Shown here piece by piece: positions 446 through 26,088 of a stretch of 64,000 bases of DNA. The DNA comes from Mustelus asterias (taxonomy: Eukaryota), in contig NW_027590433.1 of NCBI RefSeq assembly GCF_964213995.1, positions 1 to 64,000 of the forward strand. Reading direction: 5' to 3'. Position 1 is the stretch's first letter, and every line of letters begins with the position of its first letter. The translations under genes and the position numbers were made by a program. Below the pieces are notes generated by a model. It had not been told where the DNA came from. It did no database searches and saw nothing but the letters and a program-made list of their open reading frames with translations.

Positions 446-552
446 AATTAAATTAAACAAATTGCCACAACAGACAGGTATTCATCCGATTGACAAGTTT
501 TCCCGGGTAAACAGTGGCTCAACAAACAATTCATTTTATTTCTACACTGCAG

Positions 553-872
553 ATTCCAGCTCAGCTGTGTCACCAAGTTCCCTTCTACAAACCTCTGCTG
601 CCGGTGACCGGTTATTTGAAGCTGCGAATATTCAGGTCTCTGTCAGTACACAGTACACGTACCCTCAGACCCCAGGACAGGCTCAGAAATACCTGCTTCA
701 GACACACATTTCTGGAGAGGAGAATAAATCAAACAGTGTCGCGGGGAGGATTTCTGCTTCTATCGATTCTTCCGTCAAAATCAGCCGGTTAAAGATCTCC
801 AAACTTTAACTGAGCGACTCCGCTGTTTATTACTGTGAACTGAGTTGGCGCACCGGGGATATACGGTGGAGC
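553..872 (+). pseudogene. TCR V-delta pseudogene, NAR-TCR supporting-V type, with a D-like 3' extension and 23-RSS (873-911)
   Basis: Acceptor CTGCAG ends at 552. Reconstructed across two small deletions: DSSSAVSPSSLLQTSAAGD/VI*SCEYSGLCQYTVH/YPQTPGQAQKYLLQTHISGEENKSNSVAGRISASIDSSVKISRLKISKL*LSDSAVYYC. Extra Cys in CDR1. RSS: CACAGTA (873-879), 23-nt spacer, ACAATAACC (903-911). Confidence 0.85.
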
Positions 873-1121
873 CACAGTAGCTGAATCTCCCTTAACGCCC
901 GTACAATAACCTCCCAGCCTCACAGGAGTGCACCAACCTCTCTCAATAGCACCCCTCTCAGCCCACTCCCAGCCGCTGACCCCCATCCCCACCGTGATGT
1001 TGACCGAGTTTATCATATTACTGGTCTGACCCAACCCTAATCAAATCAGTCGGACACACGACAGAGAGAAAGGGTGGTGAACGGGACCGCAATAGATCTT
1101 CTTATTGGATCAAACCCTGTG

Positions 1122-1181
1122 CAACATATGAAAAGGCTAAGCTCATCTTTGGCAACGGGACCAGGCTGATTGTGGAACCCA
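1122..1181 (+). CDS. TCR J segment J1, coding intact: TYEKAKLIFGNGTRLIVEP
   Basis: FGxG motif; donor GTAAGT at 1182; heptamer CCCTGTG (1115-1121), 12-nt spacer, weak nonamer AGATCTTCT. Confidence 0.9.
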
Positions 1182-1489
1182 GTAAGTAACTAATCCTGGA
1201 TAATGATCTCTCAACATGTTATTTTATCCCCTGTGACTTAATTGAGACATACAATTATTTTAATGATCACTGTTGTTTTATGGATGAGCAGGGATCTTTG
1301 GGAATTGGAAGCGTAGCTTGACTGGGCACTTAGATTTTCCGAAGTATTTCCTTTAAACATTTAACTGGCCTCTATCATGACAACACAAGTGCGCTGCCAA
1401 CAGGGAGATATGTCAATGATCTGGCTGTATGTAGTGCAATTAAGTGACACCTCGATAAATAGCTGGAAGAGACTCACCCAGATAGAGTC

Positions 1490-1895
1490 ATAGGGTCATA
1501 GAAGGAGACAGCACTGGAAAAAGCCCTTCAGCGTAATGAGTGGCATAGATAGAGAAGACAGGAATATACTTTTCCCGTTACTTGAGAGAGCAGAGAGCAG
1601 CCAGGGACATAGATTTAAGGTAGGGGCAGGAGATTTAGCGGGGATGTGAAGAAAACGTTTTGACCCAAAGGGTGATGGGCGTCTGGGACTCACTGCCTGA
1701 AATGGTGATGGAGGCCGAGACCCTCTCAACATTTAAGAAGTATTTAGATATACATTTGTGATGTCATATCATACACGGCAATGGGCCAAGTGCTGGAAAA
1801 TGGGATTAGAATAGTTATTTGGTTTGTCTTTGACCGGCGGAGACATGATAGGCCCAAGGGCGTTTTCTGTGCAGTGGACTTCTCTGACTTTATGA
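1490..1895 (+). mobile_element. CR1-clade LINE 3' fragment
   Basis: Degenerate ORF2 C-terminal motifs (GHRFKV-like) and CR1 3' end GGGCCAAGTGCTGGAAAATGGGATTAG. Confidence 0.75.
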
Positions 1896-2520
1896 ATCTT
1901 TGCCTCAGACTATGAATAAAGAATATTTCAAATATCACTTCAGTGTGCAAATGAATCCATTATTGTGTATGAATTCTAGTGGTAGGGAACCTGTCTGAAA
2001 TGCAAAGTCATGTTTGTGTTACCTATTTCAATGGAACCCAGAATTAGGACTGCAATCATCTATGCAGCCTTCTGGCATCAAAATCACAGTTCTGAGTTAC
2101 ACTTATAAAGGTGGGGTGAGTTGGGATTGGGGGGAGGGGGTGGGTTGGGGCTCAATGGTGTAGATTTCCTTTAGTTCCAATTCTGAACGAAATCCCAAAA
2201 GCAGCATTTTTGTATGGATTTGAAAATTCCGTTCGAAAGTGAGCCAGGGAATTCTCTGCACGTGTTACCTCGCTTGGATGTGTACATTGAGAACTCCCAG
2301 CCAGTCACGCTCTGACTTATTTTCCTGGGAAATTAAGAGATGGATGACTTGGAAGATTGTAAAGGTTTCTGACTAACTTTTGATCCAAACAAACTGCAGG
2401 AAATAGTATTCTGTAGCGAGACCTGCTTAACTGCCCTGAGCAATGACTAAAGCCCTTTTTGAATTTTGGCATGCATGCTCCATGTCTTTAGGTTCTGACA
2501 TGGAGAGTAATCGCAGTGTA

Positions 2521-2582
2521 CGCTCGTGCTTCTTACAGACCATTAATATGCGGTGGTGGAACCAAATTGAGCGTGGAGCCAA
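2521..2582 (+). pseudogene. J2, probable pseudo-J: ARASYRPLICGGGTKLSVEP
   Basis: F of FGxG replaced by C; donor GTGAGT intact at 2583; degenerate heptamer CAGTGTA and poor nonamer. Confidence 0.8.
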
Positions 2583-2610
2583 GTGAGTAGAATCTATTGG
2601 CATCAATTAC

Positions 2611-2947
2611 GGGTGGCACGGTGGCACAGTGGTTAGCACTGCTGCCTCACAGCTCCAGCAATCCAGGTTCGAATCCAGGCTTGGGTTACTGTCTGTGTGG
2701 AGGTTGCACGTTCTCCCCGTGTCTGCGTGGGTTTCCGCCAGATTCTCTGGTTCCTCTCACAGTCCAAAGATGTGCGGGCTATGTTTATTGGTCATGCTGA
2801 ATTGCCCATTAGTGTCAGGGAATGTGTAGGTTAGAGGGATTAGTGGGGTAAATTTGTGGGAATAGGTCCTGGGGTGGGATTGTTGTCGGTGCAGACTCGA
2901 TGGGCCGAATGGCCTCCTTCTACACTGTAGGGATTCTATGATCTATG
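2611..2947 (+). mobile_element. HE1-like SINE
   Basis: Same head, body and tail as 96-445. Confidence 0.9.
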
Positions 2948-3440
2948 AATTTGAGAAGATTCATTTTGCACTCAGAAGTTTTTGGCCTCATTGCAAAAGT
3001 GGGGAGAAAATTTGCCATTGTGACAAACGAACCTGATGAATTATACAATGATGAAGGAATGTGTCCTTTTCCACTTGCACATAAAGAAGTTCCTCACACA
3101 ACTAAGTATCTCACACGTACCAACTATTGATACCACAATACTTCAAAGAATAGTGATCCAACTTTTTTTTTAAAAAGAAAACAATATTTCCTAATGCCAG
3201 ACTGATTCCGGGATAGCAGGATTATTAGCTTTGTTTCTCTCTCTACACGTGCTGCCAGACGTACACAGTTTATCCAGAATTGTCTCTTTCTAATTTGCTA
3301 TTTAATCGGTCGCACCTGTTTTGAGGGCAGATCGGTCATAAAATTATGCTAAGAGCATGTACTCCCCAGGGTTTTGAAATAGCTGAAGTCTCTGTGGCCT
3401 GCCCCAGTGGAAGCTTTCTGCTTGGGCAATAGTCACTGTG

Positions 3441-3503
3441 TGTATATTGCTGATAATGAAAAACTGATATTCGGCAGCGGCACCCGACTGCAGGTTGTGC
3501 CAA
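3441..3503 (+). CDS. TCR J segment J3, intact: YIADNEKLIFGSGTRLQVVP
   Basis: Nonamer GCTTTCTGC (3413-3421), 12-nt spacer, consensus heptamer CACTGTG (3434-3440); FGSG; donor GTAAGT at 3504. Confidence 0.95.
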
Positions 3504-3849
3504 GTAAGTGCGAGTCCACCTTCATTTCCTCCCATTAGATACAGATTTCTGCTGAATGGTGTCGGGTGAAAGGCCGGTAAAGAGCCAAGGCAGTGCTTGG
3601 AATGAAGGAGAAGCCATTGCACCAATCAATTAAGCTATTAGGCACCGAGTATCGAGGTCAGCTCACTGTTCATTAAGCCGTGTCATCAACACCAGTTGAA
3701 ACATTAGGCATCAGTGATGTGACATCGAACTGAAATTGGGTTACTAATAGGATAGAAAATGCCCATTTAGCAGGTTGAGTCAAATGCCCACTGATTTGAG
3801 TAATTATCTACATATATTTCATTTTCAAGCTTGTCTTTGTTAAAACTAA

Positions 3850-4780
3850 TAATCTTGCTAAAACTATACAAGGTACGATTTAGACCACATCTGGAACACT
3901 GTCCCCTTACATTAGGAAACCTATACTGGCATTGGAGGCAGTTCAGGGAAGGCCACTACTTTGATCCCAGGTATGGATATGTTTTTTCGGAGAGTTTGAG
4001 TATGTTGGGCCTCTACTTAGTGGAGTTTAGAAGCATGCGATGTGACCTTATTGAGACTTATTGGATTCTCAGGGGACATGACAAGGTTAGATGCTGAGAC
4101 GTTATTACCTCTTGGAGGACCAGAGGTCATAATCCCAAAGTATGGGGTTGCCCATTTATATGATGAAGATTTTCTTCTTTCAAGCCAGCAGTGAATCTGT
4201 GGAATCATTTACCGCAGAGAGCTGTACAGGTTGAATGTTCAGATTTTTAACCCACAGGGCAATCGAGGGTTACGAGGATACAACGGGAAAGAGGTATTCA
4301 GAATTATCACATCAGCTAATTCATGATCTCATTGAATGACCGATGGGCCAAATGGCATCCTTCTGCCCCGTCGTCCTATGGTCTCCGGTCTTTGTTAAAC
4401 TGCTGACACGAATGCATGCTTGAAATAAGGCTTCAAAGTGAAATGTTGGTCAACGATTATCAACAACAGGTTGATGTTTTGAACCAGGTGTTATAGTTCA
4501 AATTAAAGGGTCACTCCTTTAAAGACAGATATGAGGAGACTTTTTTCTCTCTTAAAGAGTAGTGAGTCTCGTCATCTCTCTTCTTCAAACATCAAGGGGA
4601 ACAGGGCCTTTGATTATTTTAAACACAGCTAGATAGATTCTTGATTAACAATGGATAAACGGTGATCGGGAGTAGGCAGGAATGTGGGGATGAGGTTACA
4701 ATCAGATCAGTCATGATCTTACTGAATAGCGGTTAGGCTGGAGTGGCCAGTGCCTTACTCCGACTCCCACTTTGCATGTT
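3850..4780 (+). mobile_element. Degenerate CR1 LINE 3' fragments
   Basis: RPHLEHC...CDLIETY motifs and CR1-type 3' ends. Confidence 0.7.
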
Positions 4781-5062
4781 CGTATGTGTTGATGTCAAAC
4801 TTTTTTCCCAGGATTTGTGTCTCCTGGGTGTTCAGGGAGAAGTACCGGTGAAGATGGAAATTGTGAAACACAGTCAATTCATTATCCAAATATTGTTCCC
4901 TGATATAGTCAAAAAAACAGTGGGAGCTAAGTGTGAGGGAGAGGGAGGGAACGGTTATATTTGGTTCAGGAGAGAAGCTAATTAAAAGAAGTGACATGAT
5001 ACAAACTGAATGTGAGCTAGCCCTGTGTTCATATGGCTGGGTCGATATTTTGTTGTAGCTGT

Positions 5063-5120
5063 TACTACCGAACTGAGAAGCTTGTCTTTGGCAAAGGGAC
5101 CAAACTCACTGTGGAGCCCA
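5063..5120 (+). pseudogene. J4: coding intact (YYRTEKLVFGKGTKLTVEP), heptamer not recognisable
   Basis: FGKG and donor GTAAGT at 5121; nonamer-like ATATTTTGT (5045-5053) but no CACTGTG-like heptamer 12 nt downstream. Confidence 0.85.
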
Positions 5121-5772
5121 GTAAGTCCTCAACTATCTTCCATCATGATCTGCTTACATTAGGATGACAATCAATATTTACAGTTCCAAACATATCACCA
5201 AGTCGTGTTTTAAAAAAAAATCAGTACACGCTTAAAGGGAGGAGATGCAATATAATGGCCATTCATAACTTGGGGAGGTCTTGTGGTGCAATGGGCTAGA
5301 ATCCCTACCTCTGAGCTAGAAACGCCGGGTCCGAGTCCCTACCCTTGGACTTGATGAACAAGAAAGGTGAGAAAGCAACGCTGCCAAAGATTGGGAGTGA
5401 GAGGGAGACTCCTGCTCAGCCACGCTTGATGTGTAGTATGGCTCTCTCAAGCTCTAAACCCTTCGCAAAAGCCGAGCGACGTGTTGCAGCAATAGCTATC
5501 ACTGAAGGCAGAAGAATTCTGCCTAAATGCACCACTCGGTGCGGAGAGGCAACTTGGCTTTAAATTTGGCCTTGGATGTGCTTAGCTTTGTAGAATGTTA
5601 TCAGATGTATTGTTCATCTCTTGGCGATAGATAATTTTTAAGGTTTACCATTCGCAGTTGTTGAGGCTCCCACTGACATCAGTGAATATGCCAGTGTCCT
5701 TGCTGTGTATACTGGATGGAATCTGAATGAGCTGATGCACTGGTAGCTTTCTGCTGGTAACTAGTCACGGTG

Positions 5773-5838
5773 CTCATTACTATGACGGTACTTATAAACT
5801 CGTCTTTGGCTACGGGAAACAACTGAATGTTGTGCCAA
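5773..5838 (+). pseudogene. J5, pseudo-J: HYYDGTYKLVFGYGKQLNVVP
   Basis: GCTTTCTGC, 11-nt spacer, CACGGTG (5766-5772); donor mutated to ATAAGT. Confidence 0.88.
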
Positions 5839-6444
5839 ATAAGTGCCAGGTGATTTCTCTTTACCCTTCGATGGATATTTCTGCAGAATCCATGTCTGGC
5901 GAATGGTGACAAAGAGGGAAAGTAACGCTTAAAATTAAAAACAAGCTGTTAGATGGATTTATGTATCATTAGATAATTAATTAGAACGATAGAGATCCAG
6001 AGGATATAATCAGTAAATTCGTAGATGATACACAAATTGGTGGTGTGGTAAATAGCGAGGAGGAAAGCCTTACATGACAGGTCGATATTGAAGGACTGGT
6101 CAAATGGGCAGAGCAGTGGAAAATTGAAATTTAACTCTAAAAAGTGTAAGCTGATGTATTTTGGGAGGACTAACAGGGCCAGGGAATATACAGAAGTTAA
6201 TTGAAACTGCATGGAAGGAAAGTTAAACTGCTAGCTATGTCTTGTACTTTTTGAAATAGAGTACAGCAAATAAAGCAAAAGGGTTAAATGGGGATGGATT
6301 TCAGGGAGAGGAATAGTTCTATTTTTGCTTTGGAGATCACCTGGCATTACAATTTGAATCCCAATCTATGGTCAAATCACCAGGTCAAGCAGGTCAAAAA
6401 CAACCTCTTGCAATACTGTCAGCACGGGAGTTACGGATTTGTGT

Positions 6445-7078
6445 AGCATCTTCCATGATTGGCCAGAACATTGAATACAGGAGTTGGGACGTTTTGTTGA
6501 AGTTGTACAAGACATTGGTAAGGCCACATTTGGAATACTGTGTACAATTCTGGTCACCCGATTATAGAAAGTATATTATTAAACTAGAAAGAGTGCAGAA
6601 AAGATTTACTAGGATGCGACCGGGACTTGATGGTTTGAGGCTGGATAGACTGGGACTTTTTTATCTGGAGTGTAGAAGATTGAGGTGTGATCTTTAGCGG
6701 TTAATAAAATAATGAGGGGTATAGATCAGCTCGATAGTCAGTTTCTTTCCCCAAAGGTAGGGACGTCTAAAACTAGAGGGCATAGGTTTATGGTGAGAGG
6801 GGCGAGATACAAATGTGTCCAGAGCGGCAATTATTTCACGCAGAGGGTGGTGAATGTCTGGAACAAGCTGCCAGAGGTAGTAGTAGAGGCGGGTACAATT
6901 TTGTCTTTTAGAAAGCATTTAGACAGTTATATTGGTAAGATGGGTACAGAGGAATATGGGCCAAATGCAGGCAATTGGGATTAGCTTAGGGGTTTAAAAA
7001 AAGGCTTCATAGACAAGTTAGGCCGAAGGGCCTGTTTCCATGCTGTAAACCTCTATGAATCTCTGACTCTATGATTGT
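6445..7078 (+). mobile_element. CR1 LINE 3' fragment abutting J6
   Basis: LYKTLVRPHLEYCVQFWSP...TRGHRF...VWNKLP and an ACTCTATG-type tail. Confidence 0.9.
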
Positions 7079-7079
7079 A

Positions 7080-7139
7080 TCATCCCCAAATCTGAAAGGC
7101 CGATCCTTGGTACTTGAACAAAACTCACTGTGGAACCTC
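7080..7139 (+). pseudogene. J6, pseudo-J: PKSERPILGT*TKLTVEP
   Basis: TKLTVEP end; FGxG decayed with an in-frame TGA; donor GCATGC; the LINE tail occupies the RSS position. Confidence 0.75.
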
Positions 7140-7436
7140 GCATGCATCCTCACAAAGTGCAATGGTCTCACCCAGCATTTACAGAAAATCTGAACCATAT
7201 TTGCTGAGATTGTAAAGTGGATAGAAATATATGACATATGGAGCTAACAGGCAAGGAGTGGGAATTAAATGTAAATTGGTGGATGGGGCGAACATATTTA
7301 TTTCAGGATATAACCTGCCCTGGCTATTGAAGTCAGCAGAATCTGAAATTGAACTCAAAACTCAAACTCAGGATAAATAAAATATAAATGAATCTTATAT
7401 TTCTGCTCAGGTGTTTGTACTTTTTGCCGCATTATG

Positions 7437-7506
7437 TACACATGTACTAGCACCAGAACTTTGAATCTTATCTTTGGCAGAGGAAACAAATTCACTGCGC
7501 AATCCA
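7437..7506 (+). pseudogene. J7, pseudo-J: YTCTSTRTLNLIFGRGNKFTAQS
   Basis: FGRG; heptamer CATTATG (7430-7436); donor ATAAGT. Confidence 0.8.
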
Positions 7507-8040
7507 ATAAGTGGTTTTAAATTTTCAGTTTGGACCTGGTTAGAGTATGAGTAACTGAAGTTACCTAGTTTTTTTGTTGCGTAGGAAATGGGCATTGCTG
7601 GCTAGGCCAGCACTTACATAGCCTGTCCCTCAATGTGGAAGGCAGTGGTGAGCTGCCTTCTTGAACCTGCTGCACTCGTCCATGTGTTGTGTGTATCATT
7701 CCATTCCTGCCTACAAAACATTTCCATTCTGTACAGAGATTGTGGGGAGTGTGGTGGCCAATGGCTACTTGAAGTTAGCAAGTGCATTAAGTTTCTGACC
7801 ATTCTTTCCCTCAAAGTTCCTTTTTGCACGATGCAAGTAAATAATTTATTGACCTATTACGTTCAAATGGTTGGGAAGTGAGGGGGGAGACATTTATATT
7901 TTTCGCTGGATATAACCTGCCCTGGCTATTGAAGTCAGCAAAATCTGAAATTGAATTCAAACTCAAACTTAGGAGACATATAATATAAATAAATCATTCT
8001 TCTGCTCATGTGGTTGGGTTTAGTTTTTTGTCCCATTGTG

Positions 8041-8110
8041 TACAGATGTGCTGGCACCAGAACTTTGTACCTTGTCTTTGGCAGAGGCAACAAATTCACT
8101 TTGCGACCCA
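8041..8110 (+). pseudogene. J8, pseudo-J, duplicate of J7: YRCAGTRTLYLVFGRGNKFTLRP
   Basis: Heptamer CATTGTG (8034-8040); FGRG; donor ATAAGA; flank ~7870-8160 is homologous to ~7275-7560. Confidence 0.82.
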
Positions 8111-8311
8111 ATAAGACATTTGAAAACGTCAGTTTGGATCTGGTTGGAACATAAGTAATTGACCTTTCCTTAAAGGTTCTCAAGGGCTCACCCTCATGTG
8201 AACTTTGTATATTCCCCTGCCTCCGAATTAATGAGTATGCTTCATCATTACTAAAGGACATCTGCAACTTCACTCCAATGGAAGGTCTATGTCTGTGCCC
8301 TTTATACTATA

Positions 8312-8361
8312 CATTATGACTATACTGTGAAGCTGCGGCACCCAGTTGACAGTTGTGCCAA
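8312..8361 (+). pseudogene. J9, pseudo-J with FG deleted: HYDYTVKL/GTQLTVVP
   Basis: GGTCTATGT, 12-nt spacer, TACTATA; internal deletion relative to J10; donor GTGAGT at 8362. Confidence 0.8.
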
Positions 8362-8510
8362 GTGAGTACGATTGGAAGTTACTCTCATTCTGTTTCATGT
8401 CGATTATTTTTTCGCTATATTGTGTCTGACAAATAGCAACCAGGGCAACGATACAAAGTATTACATGAAATACAAGTGAAGGCATTCTGTCCGTAAAATG
8501 AACTTCAGAA

Positions 8511-11460: not shown

Positions 11461-11829
11461 CCCTAGTCATTACCCTCGATAGATGGATAGCGAGCTCAGA
11501 TCTCAATGCTTAGTTAGACATGCCGCAGGTGGCAGACCAATCTCTGGGCCTCAGCAATGTGACAGACATGGATGTGCGACTCACTGGGTGACCTTGCATC
11601 CTGGTGAAGTTATGTAACTGGAGGGAAGCGATGTCCTGCTCGTATAACCGCAAAATTATTAACTCCGAAACTCAGCGAATATGTGAGGGACCTGGGTTCG
11701 AATCCCGTCATGGCAGATAGTGGAATTTGAATTCAATAATCTGGAATTAAGAATCTACTGGTGACCAGGAAAACCATTGTCGATTGTCGGAAAAACCCAT
11801 CTGGTTCATTAATTTCCTCTCGGGAAGGA

Positions 11830-13000: not shown

Positions 13001-14092
13001 GTCCTTGGTTTCTCTGTATATCATTTTTCGTATTCCCTTTTCCACCTCTTGATTTTATCCTTGTTCCCTCCTTCTCTGACTCCTTACATAATTTCCCAAG
13101 CACCTGGCATATTAGTTTCATTGGGTGACCTTGCAGTATTGTGAGGTGGTGAAACTGGGGGTAGACGATAGCCTAGTGGCGTTATCGCTAGATTATTAAT
13201 CCAGGAAATCAACTAGTGTTCTGGGGACCCTGCATTCAAATCCCTCCACGGCAGATGGTGGAATTTGAATTCAATAATCTGGAATTAAGAATCTACTGTT
13301 GACGATGCAAACCACTGTTGGAAAAACCCATCTCGTTGAGTAATGTCCTTTAGAGAAAGAAATCTGCCATTCTTATTAGATCTGGCCAACATGTGCAATT
13401 TGATTGACACTCAAGGGCAATTGGGAATGGATAATAAACTCTGGCCAGCCAACGGTGCCCATGTCCCACGAATGGACAAAAAATATCTCTCTTTTGGAAA
13501 ATGAGCCCGAGTAACTGTTGATTCAAGTAAACATAAACGCATCTTTCAGACTCAACATGTCTGTTTACCTCTTCGAAATATAACAGGATTATGACAATAA
13601 GAACAGATAATGCTGGGAAAAACCACAGCAGATCAGGCAGCATCTGTAAGGAGAGAAAGCTTAGCTAACAAATTAAAGACTATCCGTTGAATTGTATTTC
13701 TTTTCTGCCAGGTTTTGAGGCGTCACTGGCAAAGCCATGTTGCAAATTTCTGTTAAGCCATTTCAGAGATTGGCAGAGCAGGCGCAAAGGGCTGAATAGC
13801 CTTCCCTTGTTCCTATGTTAACTCGCAAAGTTTCAGAGTCAAAATATATTTGTTGTTATATTTGACCAGTGGCTACCTTGGCTCAGAAATTCTTCACTTT
13901 GATAGAATCTGAGAGCATCCAAGGAGGCTCTTCGGCCCATTTAGCCTGTGATGGTGGGGAAGGGGCAGATATGCAATGTCTGTTACCTGCAGCGAATCAG
14001 TGACTGTTCCAGCTTTTTCTTTGCCGTGAATTGTCTGAAATCTGAAACAGCTATCTCAATAGAAGGTTTCTGTCTGAGCAATTGTTACTGTG

Positions 14093-14142
14093 CTACGCAA
14101 AGCTAACGTTCGGCAGCGGCACCCAGGTGACAGTTGTACCAA
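14093..14142 (+). CDS. TCR J segment J10, intact: YAKLTFGSGTQVTVVP
   Basis: GGTTTCTGT (14065-14073), 12-nt spacer, TACTGTG (14086-14092); donor GTGAGT at 14143. Confidence 0.95.
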
Positions 14143-14930
14143 GTGAGTGTGAAGTCAGTGTGTTTCTATTCTTTCACTCCACATCTCCTCTGTGATCTAG
14201 TTTTCTGTTGTTAGTAGGCTAGTCAAGTTGGACAGAGTGCCAATATAATATGTGGCATGCAGGCGAAGAGATTGCACAGTTTTGAGTCAGTTTTGATCCA
14301 GCTCAGCTTACCCAGTCATTAGAGGTACATGGGACAGGAGTTGGGACTGCACGCCTCAGTAATATGGTATTGAACTGAGAAGCAGATTTGTGTACTGTTA
14401 GTGGGATAGGAAGATTCCATCCAGAGAGTTGATCGAAAAGAAAGAGGGGAGACGAATAAGTACCATTGTTCTGTTTAAACCTTTGTAATTGTGAATGACA
14501 CAGGCTTTTCATTTTCTTGTTGAAAAATAAATTCTCCTCATATCAGTCCCATATTCTTTGACTATGAACCCCGGTTCTGGACCCTGCTGCCATCCTGCAT
14601 TTACCGTGTCTAATCCTGCATTATGGGCTTTAATGAGATCTCCTGCTCCTGCCTCCCTTCTTCTGAACCCCAGACAATAAAATCCTAGCCGACTCAATCT
14701 CCCCTCATATGTCAGTCCTGCCACTCCATTATCTGTCCGGTGAACCTTTGGTGCACTCCCTCTTTAGCCAGAACATCCTTTCTTGGATATTGTTTTGCAT
14801 TTTTTTCTGGACGAAATAATGAACCAGCTGTGGAAGCAAATCGAATCTCAAAAACCTTAGCATGAAAAGCAATCCTTACATTGCTATTCATGTGGGTTAT
14901 GTCGATTTTGTACCATCTGGAATCACTGTG

Positions 14931-14990
14931 CAAACTATGCAACCAGAAAGCTTATCTTTGGCAGTGGAACCAAACTCACTGTAGAACCCA
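14931..14990 (+). CDS. TCR J segment J11, intact: NYATRKLIFGSGTKLTVEP
   Basis: CGATTTTGT (14903-14911), 12-nt spacer, CACTGTG (14924-14930); donor GTAAGT at 14991. Confidence 0.95.
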
Positions 14991-15758
14991 GTAAGTGAAA
15001 CTATTCTCTGCATTTTGTGTCTGGTTATAGTTTACGAAAGTAATGTCCGATTCTCATACACCTGTAAAGAATCTTTATCCTGTAATTGCTGCTGTTGAGT
15101 TGATTAGGAGGAGCAGGAGGCGAGAGGGTGGAGTGAAAAATTAAAACGTCCTCTGACAACTCTGTGTTAGAATTTACAAACAGCAAATTATTAGACTCCT
15201 GCAACGATGGAGGAGACCATTAAGCCCATCGCTCTTGCTTTGGGGACAGTAAAATCATCGTCATTGAATTTTACAGAACAGGAAGAGGTCCTGCGGCCCA
15301 TTGTGCCTGCTCCAGCCATTATAACCATATATATTCCAATCGCATTTTTCAGCACTTGGTTGTAGCCTTGAATGCTACAGCATAAATGATCTTTGGACTT
15401 GCATGCCAAGGTCCCTCTGGTCCTCTGCACTTTCTCGCGTCCTGCAGTTCATGGCGTATTCCCTTGCCTTCTTACCCCTCGCAAAATGCATCACCTCACA
15501 CTTTTCAGGTTTAAATTCCGTTTGGCACTGCTCTACCTGTCTGACCAGCTCGCCCATATCGTCCTGTAATCTTTGCAAGTCAGTGACACTTAACCTCACA
15601 CGAAAAACATGTGTGCATCCTTGGCTTGACTTTGTGTGAAATTTGTATACAGCGCTCCCGAAATAATGCAAATTAAATGTCTTTCTTCTGTCCTCTGTGA
15701 GGTAAATATGACTCAGCTGCTGCAATGCGAAGTTTCTGTCTTGGAAATTCTTCCTGCA

Positions 15759-15810
15759 TATTTACTAATCACAGTGAGACACCCACATTCAGCAGTGAAA
15801 TATGTGACCA
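15759..15810 (+). pseudogene. Possible heavily decayed J relic (TNHSETPTFSSEI...)
   Basis: Nonamer-like AGTTTCTGT (15731-15739), TFSSE resembling TFGSG, and GTAAGG at the expected distance; heptamer lost. Confidence 0.35.
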
Positions 15811-16743
15811 GTAAGGATAAGCTTACTTAATGTCATTATCTGCTGTGTGACAGACAGGGAGCCAGCATCATGTGGGAAGGTAATTGAGGACATTGCACTG
15901 ATATAATGAATTTGCGCAGCTGAATATCCACCTCAGCTCGTCCTAAATTGCAGTGTCCAGTCTTTTTTTAGCTCCAGTCCTTAGTAATGTCATATTGAAC
16001 TAAAAATATCATAATTTTACTTTTACTTCTTGGATGTGGGCATTAAATCAAATCAAATCAAATCAAATCCGAATTGCCCTCTGGGCAATTTCAGGTTCCA
16101 TGACATCGCTTCTTGGATCCAAACCACTGGACGACATATTTCCTTCTCCAAAGGACATTGTTGATCTAAATGGGCATTTACAACCTATGGCAGGAGTCCT
16201 GTTTTCATTCGCAAACTTGGCAATAATAAATTCACTTCCCTCGTCCAAGTCATTATGTATATTGTAAATAATTGTGGCCCGAGCATTGATCGCTGAGGCA
16301 CTCCACTTGTAACAGATTGTCATCCTGAAAATGCTCCTCTTATCCCAACTCTCTGTATCCTATCGATTGGCCAATCCTCTGTCCATGCGAATATATTACC
16401 CCAAAAAGCATGAACTCTGAATTAGCCCTTTGTCCGAGATCTTATTCAAAGCTTTCTCCTGCAAAGATAAAATGCCAACCATTGAACGGCAATGCTTTTT
16501 TACGGCAATCGTCGATAGTTCCCGTAGTTTTTACTAGAGGCTACACTTAGATCAATTTATTTGAAATTACTCCGAGTGCTGGGGTGGGAATTGAACCCAT
16601 TTCTTCAGAGAAATTAGCCCGGGGCTCTGCGCTGCTAATCCAATGACATTGCCATTTCACTTCAACCATCCCACAATGTTGCATGAAGAATGTTTAGTGA
16701 TAGTTTCAATCAAAAGTTTGTTACAGAGTCAGATATCACTGTG

Positions 16744-16810
16744 ATTAATTTCGTCTTGTGAGCTTTATGAAAGAATTAATATTCAGCGCTATCACCCATG
16801 GACTTCATGG
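16744..16810 (+). pseudogene. Possible decayed J relic (KELIFSAIT)
   Basis: Perfect CACTGTG (16737-16743) with a GTTTGTT-like nonamer 12-13 nt upstream, followed by LIFSAIT; no donor. Confidence 0.35.
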
Positions 16811-18164
16811 ACATATATAATATAGAGAAAGATAGAAAATAGGAGCACGAGTAGGCCATTCGACACTTAGACCCTGCTCTGCCATTCGACACGACCGTGG
16901 CTGACCCTGTAACTCAATACCATACTAGCCCTCTCCTCATAATTCTTGACACCTTGAGAGTATAGAAATATATATCCTTTTAAAATATATTCACTGATTT
17001 CGCATCCACAAACTTCTGTGGTAGAGAATTACAGTTTTACCAGCCTCTGAGTCAAGACAAAATGTCCTCATCTCAGAATTAAATGTCCAACCCTGAACAC
17101 TGAAACTTTGCTCCCTTTTTCTGGACCCCACCCCGCCAAAGGAAACAACATCCCTGCATCCAGTCTGCTCATCCCTGCTAAAATTCTGTATATTTCAAGG
17201 ACATCGCCTCTCATGTTCTAAACTCCAAGTGAATACAGATGCAGTCGCCTCTCCTGAAACGACAATCCTGCCATCCTAATAATCAGTCTGGTGTACTTTT
17301 TCTGCACTCTTTCTCTTGCAAGTGTATTTTTTCTTCGAAAGGAGACCAAAACTGCACACAATATTAGATTTCATCAAAAAAGGATTGGATTTAGGAAATG
17401 TCTTAATGGAGGAAAGTGAGGTATTAAGTTGAAAAATGTTTCCTGATTTCGCTCCTGAAAGTCTTAAACATTAAACATCGTCTAAAATCCAATTTGCTTG
17501 AATCTTGAACTCCCCAACCAGCAGCAAATGTTCCTGTTTATCAACCCTCTCCGTTTGGGAATGATTAAGTCACTCCTTAACTAAATTCCAGCGTTTTAGA
17601 GTTAAACATCATCTACACTGTTAATCGGGTACTCTGAACATACATACAGCTTACAGAGTAAAATTTCTTCTCCTCCTGCTCTGTTCAAGGAATTCTTAAA
17701 TGCTGATTTTTAATTTTATGAAAACCAGAACAAAAATGTTGCCGGTTCTGATTGCGGACTCTTCTTTATTTCAATCCTGATCTCAGATCTTTACATTCAA
17801 ACATGAATATTAAGCTCTGAATATATTTTTCGGTCTCTCAGTGTTTATGCATTCTGTCTTCTATACCTGTCTGAAGAATTTGAATAAAGACATTCGTTGA
17901 TCAATGCTTAGTCGTAGCATATGGACAATTATAAACAACATGGTTCATTGATTTTTAATTCTAAGGTGCGTTAACTTACATTTCCCTGCACTGAAAACAT
18001 CCATTAGTTTTATCCATTCACAAAATATTAATATTTCTTTGCAATTTGATGTTTCCAGCTACGCTGCTTACAATGCTGTTTATTGTGTCATTTGCATATT
18101 CAGCATTCTATCACATTTTATCACATTGTCTTAATAAACACGACTACACTGCATATCATTCTGT

Positions 18165-19514
18165 ATAGATATATATGTGCGTGCGTATTTGTGCGTGCGC
18201 GCGTGCGTGTGTGTGTGTGTGTTTATGTGTGAGTGTGTTTGTACGTCTGTATGTCCATACCTGTCTGTGTGAGTGTCTGCGGCGTGTGTATGTATTCAAA
18301 TCTCGAATCAACATAGGAGCAGGTATAGGCCATTTGGCCCATCAATACTGATCGAACATTCAAACTGATCATGGCACATTCACACACGTTCACAGACGTG
18401 CACACACGCACCCACCCATACAAAAGCACACACAGAAACACTCACACAGATGCACACAAACACACACACAAGCTACACGCACACTCACAGAATTTTGTGA
18501 CACAGAAACGTAGCATTTGCCTTCCTCATTGTTTGCTGTACATGAATGCTAGCTTTTAGTGAACAGGTCTCTCTGGAAGTCAACTCTTTTCAACCACGCA
18601 CCATGTAGGACATATTCTGTATTTCTGTTCTTTTTCCCCCCAACCAGAGTGGATAACTTCATACTTAGTTACTTTTTATTCCATCTGCTATGTCTTTGCG
18701 CATTCACTCAGCCTGTCCAAATGTCCTTGAAGCCCCCATTGCATCCTCCTCTCCATTATGTCTGTGCCATCAGCAAGGTTTTACCTATTTTATTTGGTCC
18801 CCACATCAAGTTTCTGGGTGTGTTCCAGTCACTGTGTTTGTTTCTGGGCATGTCTGTCTCTCAATACCTCCGTCTGATTGTCTCTCGATCTGTGCGTGTG
18901 TGTGTTTGTATGTGTGTGTGTGGGTGTGTGTACGCCTGTGTGCCTGTACGTCCATGCTTGCCTGTGTGTGTCTGCGGCGTGCAAAAGTATTTCAGTCTCA
19001 AAGGAACACAAGAGCAGGAGTAGGCCATTTGGCCCAAAAATAATGCTCCAACTTTCAAACAGATCATGGTACACGCACACACACACACACACACACACAC
19101 GCTCTCGCGCTCCTATTTGATTCCACAAATATGTAGCATTTGCCTTCCACATGTCTTGCTGTGCCGACATGCTAATTTTTACTGACCCATGAACAAGGAC
19201 ATCCAGCTCTCTCTGGCAACAACCCTGTCCAATCTCGCACTGTTTAGGAAATACTCTGCTTTTCTGATGTCTTTTCTTTCTGCCAGAATGGATAACTTCA
19301 CACATATTCAGTTTTATTTCATCTACCATGTTCTTGCCCATTTACTCAGCCTGTCCCAATTCCCTTCAAGTCCTCCTTGTATCCTCCTCACCATTAGTTG
19401 TGCTCATCAGCAAGACTGGAAATATTTTATTTGGTCCCCAAATCCAGTCTCTCTGTGTTTGTGTGTGGTGCTGGGTGTGTGTGTCTCTCAATGTCTCAGT
19501 GTGTGTCTGTGTGT

Positions 19515-19548
<34 letters not shown>

Positions 19549-19605
19549 GGGAGGGGGAGGGGGGCGGGGCGGGGGTATACATGCTTCCAGATGCATGTGT
19601 GTGTC
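18165..19605. repeat. Degenerate TG/CA microsatellite mosaic with LINE fragments, roughly two tandem 630-700 bp units, plus a poly-G run (19515-19547)
   Basis: GTCTGCGGCGTG, TAGGCCATTTGGCCC, TAGCATTTGCCTTCC and TTTTATTTGGTCCCCA each occur twice about 630-700 bp apart. Confidence 0.8.
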
Positions 19606-19612
19606 ATAGTGT

Positions 19613-22032
19613 CATAGAATCATAGAGGTTTACAACTTGGAAACAGGCCCTTTGGCCCAACTTTTTCATGGCGCCTTTTTCATAAACCCTAAGCCAGCCC
19701 CAAATGCCTGCATTTGGCCCATATCCCTCTAAACCCATCGTACCCATGTAACTGTCCAAATGCCTTTTAAAAGACAAAATTGTACCTGCCTCTACTACTA
19801 CCTCTGGCAGCTTGTTCCACACTCACCACCCTCTGTGTGAAAGAAATGCCCCTGTGGACACTTTTGTATCTCTCCCTCTCACCTTAAACCTATGCCCTCT
19901 AGTTGCAGACTCCCCTACCTTTGACTATCTGACTGATCTATGCCCCTCATTATTTTATAGACCTCTATGAGATCACCTCTCAGCCCCCTCAGAGAAAAAA
20001 GTCCCAGTCTATCCAGCTTCTCCTTATAACTCAAACCATCAAGTCCCAGTAGCATCCTGGAAAATCTTTTCTGCACTCTTTCTAGTTTAATCATATCATT
20101 TCTATAATAGGGTGATCAGAACTGTACACAGTATTCAAAGTGTGGCCTTAACAATGTCTTGTACAACTTCAACAAGACGTCCCAACTCCGATATTCAATG
20201 TTCTGACCAATGAAACCAAGCATGCTGAATGCCGTCTTCACCAATCTGTCCACCTGTGACGCCACTTTCAAGGAGCAATGAACGTGCACCCCTAGATCTC
20301 TTTGTTCTGTATGTCTCCCCAACGCCCTACCATTAACTGAGTGAGTCCTGCCCTGGTTCAATCTACCAAAATGCCTCACCTCGCATTTGTCTAAATTAAA
20401 CTCTGTCTGCCACTCGTCAGCCCACTGGCTCAATTGATCAAGATCCCGTTGCAATCCGAAATAACCTTCCGCACTGTCCACTATGCCACATATCTTGGTG
20501 TCACCTGCAAACTTACCAACCATGCCTCCTATATTTTCATCCAAATCATTAATATAGATGACAAATAACATTGGACCCAACACTGATCCCTGAGGCACTC
20601 CGCTGGTCACAGGCCTCCAGTTTGAAAAACAACGTCTACAACCACCCTCTGGCTTCTGTGATCAAGCCAATTTTGTATCCATTTGGCTTCCTCACGCTGG
20701 ATCCTGTGAGATTTAACCTTACAATCAACCTACCATGAGGAAACTTGTCAAAGGCCTTGCCAACTTCCATGTAGACAACATCAACTGCCTTCTTGGCTAT
20801 CCCTTCAAAAACTCAAACTCACAAGGCCATGCTGACTGTCCCGAATCAGTCCTTGCATTTCTAAATGCCTGTAGATCCTGTCTCTCAAAATACGTTCCAA
20901 CAACTTACCCACCACAGATGTGAGACTCACTGGCCTGCAGTTCCCAGGCTTTTCCCTGCAGCCCTTTTTAAACAAAGGCACAACATTTGCCACCCTCCAA
21001 TCTTCAGGCATCTCACCTATGACTAACAATGATTTAAATATCTCTGCTCGGGAACCCGCAAATTCCTCCCTAGCCTCCCACAATATCCTGGGATACACTT
21101 CATCAGTTCTCGGGGATTTATCTACCTCAATGCGCTTTAAGACTTCCAGCACCTCTTTCTCTGTTATATGTACACTCCTTAAGACATCACTATTTATTTC
21201 CCCAAGTTCCCTAACAACCATGCTTTTCTCAACAGTAAAGACTGATGAGAAATATTCATTTAGGATCTCACCTGATAAATGTGAGGTGATTCATTTTGGT
21301 AGGACTAATTTAAATGTGGATTACGGGGTCAAAGGTACGGTTCTGAAGACTGTGGAGGAACAGAGAGATCTTGGGGTCCATATCCACAGATCTCTAAAGG
21401 TTGCCACTCAAGTGGATAGAGCTGTGAAGAAGGCCTATAGTGTGTGGAGTTTAAGAGCCGTGGGGTTATGCTGCAACTGTACAGGACCTTGGTGAGACCA
21501 CATTTGGAATATTGTGTGCAGTTCTGGTCACCTCACTATAAGAAGGATGTGGAAGCGCTGGAAAGAGTGCAGAGGAGATTTACCAGGATGCTACCTGGTT
21601 TGGAGGGTAGGTCTTATGAGGAAAGGTTGAGGGCGCTCGGGCTCTTCTCTCTGGAGCGGAGGAGGCTGAGGGGAGACTTAATAGAGGTTTATAAAATGAT
21701 GAAGGGGATAGATAGAGTGAACGTTCAAAGACTATTTCCTCGGGTGGATGGAGCTATTACAAGGGGGCATAACTATAGGGTTCGTGGTGGGAGATATAGG
21801 AAGGATATCAGAGGTAGATTCTTTACGCAGAGAGTGGTTGGGGTGTGGAATGGACTGCCTGCAGTGATCGTGGAGTCAGACACTTGAGGAACATTTAAGC
21901 GGTTATTGGATAGGCACATGGAGCACACCAGGATGATAGGGAGTGGGATAGCTTGATCTTGGTTTCAGATAAAGCTCGGCACAACATCGCGGGCCGAAGG
22001 GCCTGTTCTGTGCTGTACTGTTCTATGTTTCT
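19613..22032. mobile_element. Head-to-head 5'-truncated CR1 LINEs (minus 19613-21270; plus 21271-22032)
   Basis: RT and C-terminal ORFs 20116-20610(-), 20805-21221(-) and 21444-21887(+); outward-facing tails. Confidence 0.92.
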
Positions 22033-22182
22033 ATTTTCACCCGTGTGTGTGTGTATGTATATGTGTGCGCGCGCGTGTGTGTGTATGTGTGTGTGTGTTT
22101 GTGTGCATATGTGTCTATGCATGTCCGTCTATCTGCTTATATGCCTGGGCATGTGTGCGTGTGCATGTGAGTGTGTGAATGT

Positions 22183-22238
<56 letters not shown>

Positions 22239-22440
22239 AAGAGAGGCGTCACTCCTCAGCCTTCTCTGTGCCAAGCGAAAAAGCCCTAATTATCCAGTCT
22301 CAGCATTCGGTAAATTAATGGAGAAAATCACATAGGGTTAAGACATAGAAAAAATGCGGGTCTAATCGAATGGCTCAGCAGGTTGGAGGAGGTCACTCTG
22401 TTGGATTCTGATTATTTCCTTTTATTTATTAAATTTTCAG

Positions 22441-22752
22441 AGGCGAAAGGCCCGGTAGAACCAAAATTGAGCGTCTTTTACCCGCCAGTGCCACGGGGAG
22501 CCACCGGCACCGACACAGCTGCAGTATGCTTGGCCTCGGACTTCTCGCCCAACGCAATCCAGCTCTCCCTGTACACGGGATCCGGCCAGGAGGCCAATGT
22601 GACAAGATCCAGTGTCCTATTGGAGAGCGGGAATTACAGGAGCTCGGGTTTTCTCTCTTTCCCCCAATCCGAGGAATCGCCAAACATCACGTGCAAGGCA
22701 TTTCACGATAATCGAAATTACTCAGTAAACATCCCGCCCACAGCTGAAATTG
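22441..22752 (+). CDS. TRDC: TCR delta constant region, exon 1 (C1-set Ig domain)
   Basis: Acceptor TTTTCAG at 22440 and donor GTAAGT at 22753, phase 1/1 compatible with the J donors. AKGPVEPKLSVFYPP...TAAVCLASDFSP...NVTRSSVLLESGNYRSSGFLSFP...NITCKAFH has both Ig cysteines and matches my recollection of skate/shark C-delta rather than C-alpha. Confidence 0.9.
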
Positions 22753-23199
22753 GTAAGTTTATTTTATTTTCGTTCACGTGATGTGGGTGTCCTTGGCTTG
22801 GCCAACATTTATTGCCCGTCCTAAATTGCCCTTCAGCAGAGGACATTTAAGAGTCACTTGCCGGCCAGACCATGTAAGGACGGCAGATTTCGTTCGCTAA
22901 AGGAAGTTAGTGAACCAGATGAGTTTTAATGATAATCGACAATGGTTTCAGGGTCATCATGAAACTTTTAATTCCAATTTTTAAAAAAATGTTCAAATTT
23001 CGCAGCTGCCATCCCCAGGTCAGCATTCTGGGTCGTTGGATTACCAGTCCAGTGACAATGCCACTGCGCCACTGCGTCCTCTCAGAATGTTTTATGACAG
23101 GAAGAACTTGCTCTAAATATTATCCATCCTCTTAACGACCTAAGGACTCTCGGTGTCATCGTCACTCAAAGTGTAGTCTTTTTGAAAGGTTAGCTGACT

Positions 23200-24990
23200 A
23201 ATGATTGACGGTCAATTATCCTAGTCTGGGGACTTCACTGCAGGAGTTCCTCAGTGTGTCAGGCCTAACCAGCTTCAGTTGCTTCATCAATCACCTTCAA
23301 TCCATTATAAGGTCAGAAGTTGGGATGTTCGCTGATGACTGAACAATTTTCAGCACCATTCGTGACACCTCAGATCTTGAAGTAGTGCATTACAAATGCA
23401 GCAATAGCTGGACAATACCTAGGCTTTGACTGACAAGCTACAAGTAACATTTGCGCCACACATGTTCCAGGCAATGACCAACTCCAACAGGAAAGAAGCT
23501 AACAACCGGCTCTTGACATTTAATGGCATTACCATGACTGAAACAAAGAACAAAGAAAATTACAGCACAGGAACAGGCCCTTCGGCCCTCCAAGCCTGCA
23601 CCGACTATGCTGCCCGACTTAACTAAAACCCCTTTCCCTTCCGGGGACCATATCGCTCTATTCCCATCTTATTCATGTATTTGTCCAGATGTCCCTTAAA
23701 ACTCACTATCGTATCTCCTTCCACTACCTCCCCCGGCAACGAGTTCCAGACACCCACCACCTTCTGTGTAAAAACTCTGCCTCGTACGTCTCCTTTAAAC
23801 CTTGCCCCTCGCACCTTAAACCTATGCCCCCGAGTAATTGACTCTTCCACCCTGGGAAAAAGCTTCTAACTATCCACTCTGTCCATGCCTCTCATAATCC
23901 TGTAGACTTCTATCAGGTCAACCCCCACTATCAACATCCTGAGGGTTAACGTTGCTCAGAAACTGGACTGGACTATCCATATAAGTGCTGTAGCTGCAAG
24001 AGAATGTCGGAGGTTGGGAATCCTGTGGTGAGTAACGTATCTCCTCATCCCCCAAATCCTCTGCCCCATCCACAAGACATAATCATGACTGTGGTAGTGT
24101 ATTCGCCACTTGCCTCGATGAATGCAGCTCCAACAACACTCAGACATTTGACACGACCCAGGACAAAGCAGCTCCGCTTGATTAACAGTGTGTTTATGAG
24201 TGTCACAAGTCGGCTTACATTAAAACTTCAATGAATTTATTGTGACAATCCCATAGTCGCCACACTCTGTGCCTGTTCGGGTTACACTGAGGGAGAATTT
24301 AGCATGGCCAATGCATCTAATCAGCACGTCTTTCGGACTGTGGGAGGAAACCGGAGCGCCCGGATCAAACCCACGCTGACACGAGGAAAACGTGCAGACT
24401 CTGCACAGACAGTCACCCAAGCTGGGAATCGAACACAGGTCCCTGACACTGTGGGCGGGGGGGAGTGGCGGGGGGGGGGGGGGGCGGAGGGGAGTGGCGG
24501 GGCGTTGGGGGGGGGGTGGCGGTGCAGCAGTACTAACCACTGTGCCACTGTGCGGCTCAAGCATTAAGTACTCTATTCACAAACATCCACTTCTTCCACC
24601 ACCGAAGCACAATGGCAGCAGTGTGTGCCATCCACAAGATACACAGCAGTAACTCTCCAAGTCTCCTTCCGCTGAATCTTCCAAACTCACGACCGTTATC
24701 ATCTCGGAGGACAAGGGCAGCAGATACCTGGGAACACCATCATCTGGACGTTACCCTCCATGTCACTCAGCATCCTGACTTGGAAATGTTTCGGCAGTTC
24801 CTTCACTGTCGCAGAGTCAAAATGGTGGAACTTCTTCCCTAACAGCACTGTGTGTGTACGTACCCCTGACAGACTGCAGAGGTTCAAGCAGGAGACTCAC
24901 AACCATCTTCTGAAGGGGGCAATTAGGGATTGGCAATAAATGCTGACCTGCCAGTGATGTCCACATTCCGTAAATGAATAAAAATAATAA
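23200..24990. mobile_element. Old LINE (+) with a nested CR1 3' fragment (23541-23920, -) and a SINE (24220-24556, -)
   Basis: MFADD-like RT remnant near 23326; TRGHRFKV ORF 23623-23850; SINE body on the minus strand. Confidence 0.75.
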
Positions 24991-25472
24991 GAGCTAACTA
25001 TTATAATTCAGGGCAGTGTGCAGGACCCGTAACTGCTGGTACATCACCGAATTTAGGAACGTATTAAATACTAACCAGGGTACTGGAGAATCCCGTTCCT
25101 CTGGAGAAATGCCCTGATATCATTTAATCCACTGCAGAGCTGAAATCAGGCCTCGGTTTCACGACGTTTTCGGAAGACAGTGAAATACTGCACTGATGGA
25201 ACGGCTCTGGATCCTGGGTTTTAATCCCTGATGGGGAATCTACCCTGCACTCTTTGAACTCAGAATTGGGACGAACTAAATGGCAGAGCTACCAATGTTT
25301 CTCCGTTGTGAATAATCAAGTGAACAAGTCCAATCGTGCTGTTTGATTCTTACTTTCTTCGTGGCTTTTGGTTATGACAACAACATTATTCAAAGTGATA
25401 TTGAGAACAAACATGGTTACAGTAATGTCACTTGCTCACTTAATAAGTCAAATGTCATTTTTGCCCTTCCAG

Positions 25473-25535
25473 ATAAACCTAAATGCCCTACAGGTCGAAG
25501 TGATTCCTTGACAGAATCAAGTGACACGGAAAACG
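25473..25535 (+). CDS. TRDC: TCR delta constant region, exon 2 (connecting peptide DKPKCPTGRSDSLTESSDTEN)
   Basis: Acceptor CCTTCCAG at 25472, donor GTATGT at 25536, 63 nt, phase 1/1, one Cys for the interchain disulfide. Confidence 0.85.
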
Positions 25536-25977
25536 GTATGTGCTTTATTCAACATTTATCAAAGTAAAATACTTGCAAATAGACGGATTGATAAGTGGAC
25601 AAATAGGCACGGATACAGACCCGGAGATTGAATGATAAACATATAGTGAGATGGGGAAAAAGATAGATTGTCACACAGAGTGAGGGAGAGAGATATATCA
25701 ATCGAGTGGGATAGCGAGAGAGGAGGAGAGGCGGGGAGAGAGAGAGAAACTCAGAGTGAAAGAGAGATGAAGATAGATAAACAGGCAAGCAGACGGTCGG
25801 ACGGACGGACTGACAGAGATGGACAGACGGACGGACGGACAGGGATGGACAGACGGACGAAAGTCAAGCTGTTAGATAATGGAAAAAATATCACATTAGA
25901 GGTATACAGTTGTTTTTCAATACCAAATCATATATCCATTAAACCAGATCTATCATTTGTTTCTCTTATTTTGGCAG

Positions 25978-26088
25978 ATCGACTGAGGGTGAACTTTTTG
26001 TCTTTGACGGTGATGGGGCTAAGAATTTTGTTTTTCAAGAGCATTGTCTTCAATGTCATGATGACGGCCAGGGTGTGGCTATTTTGAG
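25978..26088 (+). CDS. TRDC: TCR delta constant region, exon 3 (transmembrane and tail DRLRVNFLSLTVMGLRILFFKSIVFNVMMTARVWLF*)
   Basis: Acceptor TTGGCAG at 25977; alpha/delta-type TM with R and K (GLRILFFKS); TGA 26085-26087 followed by donor GTAAGG at 26089, implying an untranslated exon 4. Confidence 0.93.

Follow-up and report, generated by a model that had tools for sequence, protein, structure and literature searches.

A T cell receptor delta J-C unit of the houndshark Mustelus asterias and its probable place in a multicopy NAR-TCR-type cluster

Does a T cell receptor (TCR) delta constant (C) gene, preceded by an array of joining (J) segments with no free diversity (D) segment in sight, belong to a single alpha/delta locus, or is it one of several such units in the genome? 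The question is raised by 64,000 nucleotides of DNA of the houndshark Mustelus asterias (contig NW_027590433.1, positions 1 to 64,000, forward strand), hereafter the window. Read from its start, the window contains a dead supporting variable (V) segment, then the J array, whose first J (Ja) starts about 210 bases further on, and, about 7.5 kb past the last good J, an intact C-delta gene. In our reading, the window probably covers the 3' portion of a single copy of a NAR-TCR-type TCR-delta cluster that exists in multiple copies.

Delta identity of the constant gene

The constant gene comprises three exons on the + strand. Exon 1 (22441..22752) encodes an immunoglobulin (Ig) C1-set domain (Pfam C1-set, E 1.3e-05; no other family at E <= 10) and is in phase 1 at entry and exit. 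Exon 2 (25473..25535) encodes a connecting peptide with one Cys, and exon 3 (25978..26088) encodes a transmembrane segment with Arg and Lys, a stop at 26085-26087, and a donor after the stop. All junctions of the gene are in phase 1, all three exons are open, and the splice sites are intact. The preliminary description of the window had listed an intact three-exon constant gene, and both the exon borders as read and the contigs of run X2, in which the same borders are spliced, bear it out. In particular, the contig joints 22751->25472 and 25534->25977, with GT..AG ends, confirm the 3' border of exon 1 and both borders of exon 2. Record 16 of run X2 spans exons 2 and 3 and continues beyond 26088 for 551 letters that are absent from the compared stretch, which implies a further 3' exon. 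The record of run X2 carries no RNA label, and its RNA-like behaviour is judged from the spliced contigs and the low intron depth. At 7 of 286 positions the exon-1 contig of the run (record 10) departs from the window, indicating that X2 shows expression of a close paralogue and not of the window copy.

Exon 1 distinguishes delta from alpha by a short signature. The published signatures are CLXXXFXP for trd and CLXTD followed by F or XF for tra (Giorgetti et al. 2023, PMC10322711; statements from the literature here and below follow excerpts of the cited texts). Exon 1 reads CLASDFSP, which fits the former and not the latter. A search of 1.84 billion representatives gives 41 proteins at E <= 0.001. 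The best relative is P0001, a M. asterias model composed of a NAR-TCR V, a supporting V, and a C whose exon 1 is 83% identical to that of the window (phmmer). NAR-TCR-type and supporting V are joined to a C of 83-94% identity in P0001, P0042, P0046, P0050, P0051, and P0052, and a VH-like V is joined to a related C in P0003; all of these are gene models, not cDNA. NCBI gives the relatives in skate and stingrays the name 'T cell receptor delta constant'. The weaker matches examined include light chains, one further delta-like chain, a gamma-like chain, and a repeat protein. Taken together, the signature, the V partners of the nearest proteins, and the batoid names support the assignment of the gene as delta-type, as the preliminary description had proposed.

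The assignment has to be weighed against a C-alpha gene preceded by the last part of an ordinary J-alpha array, which we regard as highly improbable. Exon 3 scores nearly alike against the human TCR transmembrane regions of alpha (30.6 bits) and delta (30.2 bits), with Arg and Lys conserved, and CLASDF is one conservative change away from the tra signature CLXTDF. Some relatives are called 'alpha chain MC.7.G5-like' by NCBI, but these names are automatic. A connecting-peptide exon that encodes a Cys and a transmembrane exon that encodes Arg and Lys are features of alpha as well and thus non-discriminating. However, the trd signature is matched exactly, the relatives carry NAR-TCR V, which the excerpted literature assigns to delta, and the skate and stingray orthologues are named delta constant. 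In addition, a V pseudogene lies just before the first J, and the array contains only three canonical J, not the tens of functional J of an alpha locus.

Three other approaches do not tell alpha from delta. A PDB sequence search with exon 1 gives antibody chains and no TCR among the best 60 of 5,624 matches. The AlphaFold2 (AF2) model of exon 1 (pLDDT 86.3) has a generic C1-set fold, for which Foldseek ranks constant domains of major histocompatibility complex class II and of light chains at the top. The ESM Atlas likewise returns generic C1-set clusters only.

A stretch of 63 bases beside a GA-repeat just 5' of exon 1 (22246-22308) is used as an extra exon in the NCBI models P0050 and P0051 (21 of 21 residues identical); it may be an alternative exon or else an artefact of annotation.

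Probable copies of C-delta in M. asterias

C-delta is carried by 11 NCBI models of M. asterias (P0001, P0002, P0042, P0043, and P0046-52), located on 11 contigs of 34 kb to 20.4 Mb. The duplicated or second delta locus suggested in the preliminary description is therefore supported, and indeed understated. Nine of the 11 models cover the whole of exon 1 and present eight distinct sequences in two subtypes, none identical to that of the window. Six models are 93-94% identical to the window in exon 1 (BLASTP; 6-7 differences in 103 residues), and three are 82.5-83.5% identical (17-18 differences). The changes recur at few positions: after G-x-D, in N-A-I-x, and in F-x-Q-S-E-x. The transmembrane exon is identical at 36 of 36 residues in 9 of the 11 models (P0001, 91%; P0046, 97%), and some non-coding pieces are also identical among the paralogues. 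The variation of exon 1 beside an identical transmembrane exon could reflect diversifying selection or patchy gene conversion.

One model keeps the order of segments along with the constant gene. Model P0049 maps to Jb (29 of 29 residues, other frame), Jd (20 of 22), Jh (26 of 28, other frame), Jk, and C in the order of the window, indicating that the whole J-C module has been duplicated. P0048, P0049, and P0052 have a common J-to-C junction, VEPK or VVPK followed by AKGPVEP. In run X3, exon-1 positions with two letters have unequal shares (48.3/189.3, 100/250, and 288.3/451.8), which fit more than two copies, with the caveat that depths of this kind cannot be read as copy numbers. Searches seeded with mustelid or catshark C regions each give 8 M. 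asterias models versus 1 for catshark, 1 for whale shark, and 1-2 for sevengill, a comparison weakened by model length limits and annotation differences. A full-text search, whose reach does not extend to the key shark TCR papers and their supplements, found no published multicopy C-delta in sharks.

Several points weigh against a multicopy cluster. The copy count rests on NCBI gene models and contig sizes, and some of the copies may be haplotigs or assembly duplicates. The exon-1 variant of the window itself is seen in none of the contigs of four runs, contigs being prone to drop rare variants, and at position 22510 every contig of all four runs reads a letter other than that of the window; further exon-1 letters that differ stand, for example, at 22560-61, 22583, 22663, and 22674. 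The NAR V of the unit, if there is one, would have to lie before base 1, and a J-alpha array may lie more than 38 kb past C. Finally, a search for a shark C-alpha comparator with the transmembrane region of a stingray delta constant gave two matches, both delta.

The J-alpha array matters for another explanation, in which the window would hold the one canonical D-J-C-delta region of the genome, in an alpha/delta translocon whose J-alpha array begins more than 38 kb downstream. In favour of such a locus, V segments occur downstream of C-delta in mammals. Shark TCR genes are also stated to be in translocon arrangement (PMC6795676, PMC12227049). We nevertheless consider a single translocon improbable: the 11 C-delta models lie on 11 contigs, no D precedes the J within the window, and C is followed by one V with a 23-bp-spacer recombination signal sequence (23-RSS) on the + strand and three V relics on the - strand. 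Motif and profile scans of the 38 kb after C find no J, the profile giving only noise past 19 kb (E 3.8, 18, and 22), in line with the preliminary description, which had found no J array there. The canonical order 5'-trdc-(traj)n-trac-3' is accordingly not found within the window, where V segments and no J occupy the 38 kb after C.

J segments, the dead V, and the D question

The motif scan, the profile, and the reading of each match together give 15 J-like elements, all on the + strand, between 1,095 and 18,836. A strict six-frame scan for F/W-G-x-G-T/S/A-x-L/V has five matches, all five on the + strand, at 1148, 3470, 5087, 14109, and 14957. A profile built from six J has 11 + strand matches at E <= 0.005 between 1081 and 15001, and four relics were added to the count by reading weaker profile matches. 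CACAGTG heptamers are enriched in the window (21 versus 11.8 expected), a number reached in 0 of 100 shuffles.

Three J are fully canonical: the spacer is 12 bp, the heptamer ends in GTG, the motif is FGSG, and the GT donor is in phase 1. They are Jc (3413..3503; heptamer CACTGTG, donor GTAAGT), Jk (14065..14142; a short J with GGTTTCTGT, spacer 12, and TACTGTG, donor GTGAGT), and Jl (14903..14990; CGATTTTGT, spacer 12, and CACTGTG, donor GTAAGT). Jk is identical to model P0050 at 17 of 17 residues. Three further J are doubtful, combining only part of the features of a functional J (12-RSS, open FGXG frame, and phase-1 GT donor). Ja (1095..1181) has a weak 12-RSS (heptamer CCCTGTG, spacer 11, nonamer with four mismatches), FGNG, and the donor GTAAGT; models P0048 and P0009 have the same J joined to C. 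Jb (2491..2582) has a weak RSS (CGCAGTG), CGGG replacing FGGG, and the donor GTGAGT. Jd (5057..5120) is an open J with FGKG (at 5087) and GTAAGT, without usable heptamer or spacer; it is 20 of 22 residues identical to P0051, as it is to P0049.

The remaining nine elements are dead. AT replaces the donor GT in Je (5746..5838; RSS CACGGTG, FGYG) and stands at the donor of Jg (7410..7506; FGRG, heptamer CATTATG), and the donor is lost in Jh (8023..8110; FGRG). In-frame stops interrupt Jf (7087..7137), which is also without donor, and Jj (13470..13526), which reads FGK and then stops. Ji (8323..8361) retains the donor GTGAGT, and its FG codons are deleted. The last three are relics or RSS: Jm (15726..15815), a decayed J-like relic (profile E 0.77); Jn (16715..16800), a 12-RSS-like site (heptamer 16737-16743) with a decayed J (FSAI); and Jo (18803..18836), a solitary 12-RSS-like site with no J after it.

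The array described earlier is therefore real, but the count of at least 11 J spliced in phase was too high: only 6 of 15 (Ja, Jb, Jc, Jd, Jk, and Jl) keep an open frame with GTAAGT or GTGAGT straight after the first base of a codon. The five J that have both an RSS and a GT donor have coding lengths of 50-64 nt, which are ordinary. A recent tandem duplication does not account for the array. Self-comparison of 1-20000 yields only the pair Jg/Jh, of which the former is a duplicate of the latter (7294-7566 versus 7896-8170, 80.6%), and a 75% match confined to Ja and Jl. Most J are dead, and beyond Jg/Jh there is no recent tandem duplication; the array is therefore old and decaying rather than, as first described, an expanded array of alpha style. 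Three fully canonical and three doubtful J are in the usual range for J-delta, and the J of the window match J joined to C-delta in other sharks. After the dead segments are discounted, the array is ordinary.

The supporting V before the array (553..872, + strand) is a leaderless V-delta pseudogene of NAR-TCR type, with 64-68% identity to the supporting V found in NAR-TCR models of M. asterias. It has a splice acceptor at 552/553 and no leader, and is disrupted by two frameshifts and a TAA stop; a stretch of complementarity-determining region 1 (CDR1) with Cys is read only in a shifted frame. An RSS scan locates a 23-RSS directly after it (873..911, + strand; CACAGTA, spacer 23, ACAATAACC). 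Between the Cys region and the heptamer are 28 bases that are absent from functional relatives. The extra bases plausibly represent a germline V-D join. The V in the 'dead V-D fusion' of the preliminary description is thus certainly dead, and the fusion itself is plausible.

An interspersed repeat has two copies in this part of the window (95-441 and 2611-2948; 84% over 350 bases), one before the dead V and the other between Jb and Jc.

A lenient scan of both strands of the 64 kb for 12-D-23 or 23-D-12 finds no D, in agreement with the preliminary description. The sole match, once per strand, consists of TAT-TAC-TGT codons of a V at 56177, and 20 shuffles gave 0-2 matches.

How would such a unit work? 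Based on standard V(D)J biology, RAG would join a V with 23-RSS to one of Jc, Jk, and Jl, and perhaps to Ja; the join would be direct or would go through a D located outside the window. The transcript would then be spliced in phase 1 from the J donor to exon 1, and the chain would pair through the Cys of exon 2 and use the Arg and Lys of exon 3 to assemble with CD3. The window copy has only a dead supporting V of its own and so cannot make a NAR-TCR chain alone. It is either fed by other V segments or decaying with its C still intact.

A further reading, the main one of the preliminary description, is a working D-less delta unit, in which V is joined directly to Jc, Jk, or Jl to give C-delta chains with a short VJ-type CDR3. 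Such a unit is compatible with the multicopy cluster, and we consider it possible, if rather unlikely. The spacers permit direct joining, since the V carry 23-RSS and the J carry 12-RSS; no 12-D-23 is present on either strand; and the V adjoining Ja may have captured a D in its 28 extra bases. Precedents exist in the D-less TRD of newt and axolotl (PMC12698447) and in the supporting V of platypus TCR-mu, which is D-less (PMC3457774). However, a D may lie before base 1, no transcript of the window copy is present among the run contigs, and the cDNA-like delta chains of other elasmobranchs (P0018, P0020, and P0053) have long CDR3, suggesting the use of D. The V-J junctions of the NCBI models do not help in either direction, as they look like read-through of J flanks and are uninformative on D. 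Their use as proof of germline-joined or D-less genes was rejected on the example of P0048, which reads through the Ja flank (window 1016-1222) in an artefact-like manner.

Another reading is a silent copy in decay, with a dead V, mostly dead J, and a C left intact only through recent duplication or gene conversion. Nine of 15 J-like elements and the sole adjacent V are dead, and the spliced X2 contig differs from the window in exon 1 by 7 letters, consistent with silence. On the other hand, none of the C exons is interrupted and their splice sites are intact, Jc, Jk, and Jl are fully canonical, and contigs cannot show absence. We hold this reading, too, to be a minority possibility.

The multicopy NAR-TCR-type cluster, to which we return, allows a wider and more tentative proposal, one that we find conceivable without favouring it. 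The NAR-TCR/TCR-delta genes of houndsharks may have left the translocon to form at least 10 self-contained units, each with its own J array, its own slightly divergent C-delta, and a supporting V that faces J without D and is VJ-encoded. If so, the D-less units would be a case of convergence with monotreme TCR-mu and shark Ig miniclusters, and the V-D relic of the window would record the germline RAG join that removed D. Overall, the observation made in the preliminary description is partly confirmed, and its interpretation is partly supported.

Likeness to other loci and the sequence after C-delta

The closest counterpart of the window is the NAR-TCR/TCR-delta system of nurse shark and elephant shark (Criscitiello 2006, via PMC1845163 and PMC12227049). 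As excerpted, its supporting V-delta is leaderless and has a splice acceptor, its J have FGXG and 12-RSS, and its C-delta combines a C1-set domain, a connecting-peptide Cys, and an Arg/Lys transmembrane segment, all as in the window. The nearest proteins of the window C carry NAR-TCR V. The window differs in that its supporting V is a pseudogene, which is followed by the J with no D in between. Shark TCR genes are described as a mammal-like translocon, with only Ig genes in repeated clusters (PMC12227049, PMC6795676), whereas C-delta and the J array of M. asterias are apparently present in many copies.

The TCR-mu of monotremes and marsupials resembles the proposed shark arrangement in having duplicated clusters, each with its own delta-related C (PMC3457774). 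The TCR-mu clusters are tandem, and their supporting V, of little diversity, is without D in platypus and germline-joined in marsupials (PMC3457774). The lineage and the type of the N-terminal V differ from the shark, the excerpted text treats the two as convergent, and a tandem order is known for the TCR-mu clusters only (PMC3457774).

The TRD locus of axolotl and newt, like the window, has V with 23-RSS, J with 12-RSS, and no D found, so that V and J can be joined directly in keeping with the 12/23 rule; salamander TRD is also reported to contain a pre-joined V region (PMC12698447). The absence of D in newt is supported by CDR3 data as excerpted, whereas in the shark it concerns one 64-kb window that starts 550 bases before V (PMC12698447).

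TCR-delta-2 of duck and chicken is, like the window, an extra V-(D)-J-C-delta cluster beside a conventional locus, which in duck has 2 D-delta, 2 J-delta, and at least 68 J-alpha (PMC5278385). Unlike the shark, the birds are described as having a single cluster that spans about 16 kb and contains one each of VH-delta, D, and J (PMC5278385). The shark Ig miniclusters are similar to the window in consisting of many repeated V-(D)-J-C units, some germline-joined (VD-J); they differ in being Ig genes with one J per cluster, while the window is a TCR-delta unit with a J array (PMC6795676).

The main interest lies in the multicopy C-delta, which is seen indirectly, D-less delta loci being already known in salamanders (PMC12698447). 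If true, a dozen slightly different C-delta copies, each with its own J, would blur the distinction between TCR translocon and Ig cluster and would be a second, independent case of TCR-mu-style organisation. Functional differences between the C-delta copies would also become a question, as exon 1 varies at a handful of positions beside an identical transmembrane exon.

Downstream of C-delta are debris of long interspersed nuclear elements (LINEs), with reverse-transcriptase frames, and four V segments in mixed orientation, which under the multicopy reading would belong to a neighbouring unit; no J-alpha array follows within the window. The V segments had been missed in the preliminary description. 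One of them is an open V-alpha/delta exon on the + strand (55883..56225; Pfam V-set E 5.5e-15) with a 23-RSS composed of a perfect heptamer CACAGTG, spacer 23, and a near-perfect nonamer, ACAAAAACT. It lies about 30 kb 3' of C-delta and points away from the J-C unit of the window, as if part of the next unit. A search for its leader exon gave one weak candidate only and none that is convincing. The other three are on the - strand: a pseudogene whose frame meets a stop ahead of the Cys region and whose RSS is disturbed (57592..57990; Pfam V-set E 2.7e-14), a second pseudogene, stopped in CDR1, that has a good 23-RSS (58995..59340), and a decayed V-like open frame (49339..49674) that matches P0005 by tblastn at 24% identity (E 1.3e-04).

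The LINE frames at 29184-31409 and 39711-41465 match Pfam RVT_1 (E about 1e-34), and the first also carries an endonuclease piece. Many shorter LINE fragments are scattered in the J-C intron and in C intron 1. A GC-rich open frame is present in two tandem copies, 46447-47322 (291 aa) and 47422-48198 (258 aa); the first, the only copy searched, has no Pfam match at E <= 0.001, and the local G+C is 0.59 versus about 0.45 elsewhere. CA/GT-rich low-complexity tracts at 18.1-19.6, 22.0-22.25, 38.5-39.4, and 43.5-44.8 kb are a source of false RSS-like matches and of spurious long frames. The segment 18203-18883 is duplicated at 18892-19508.

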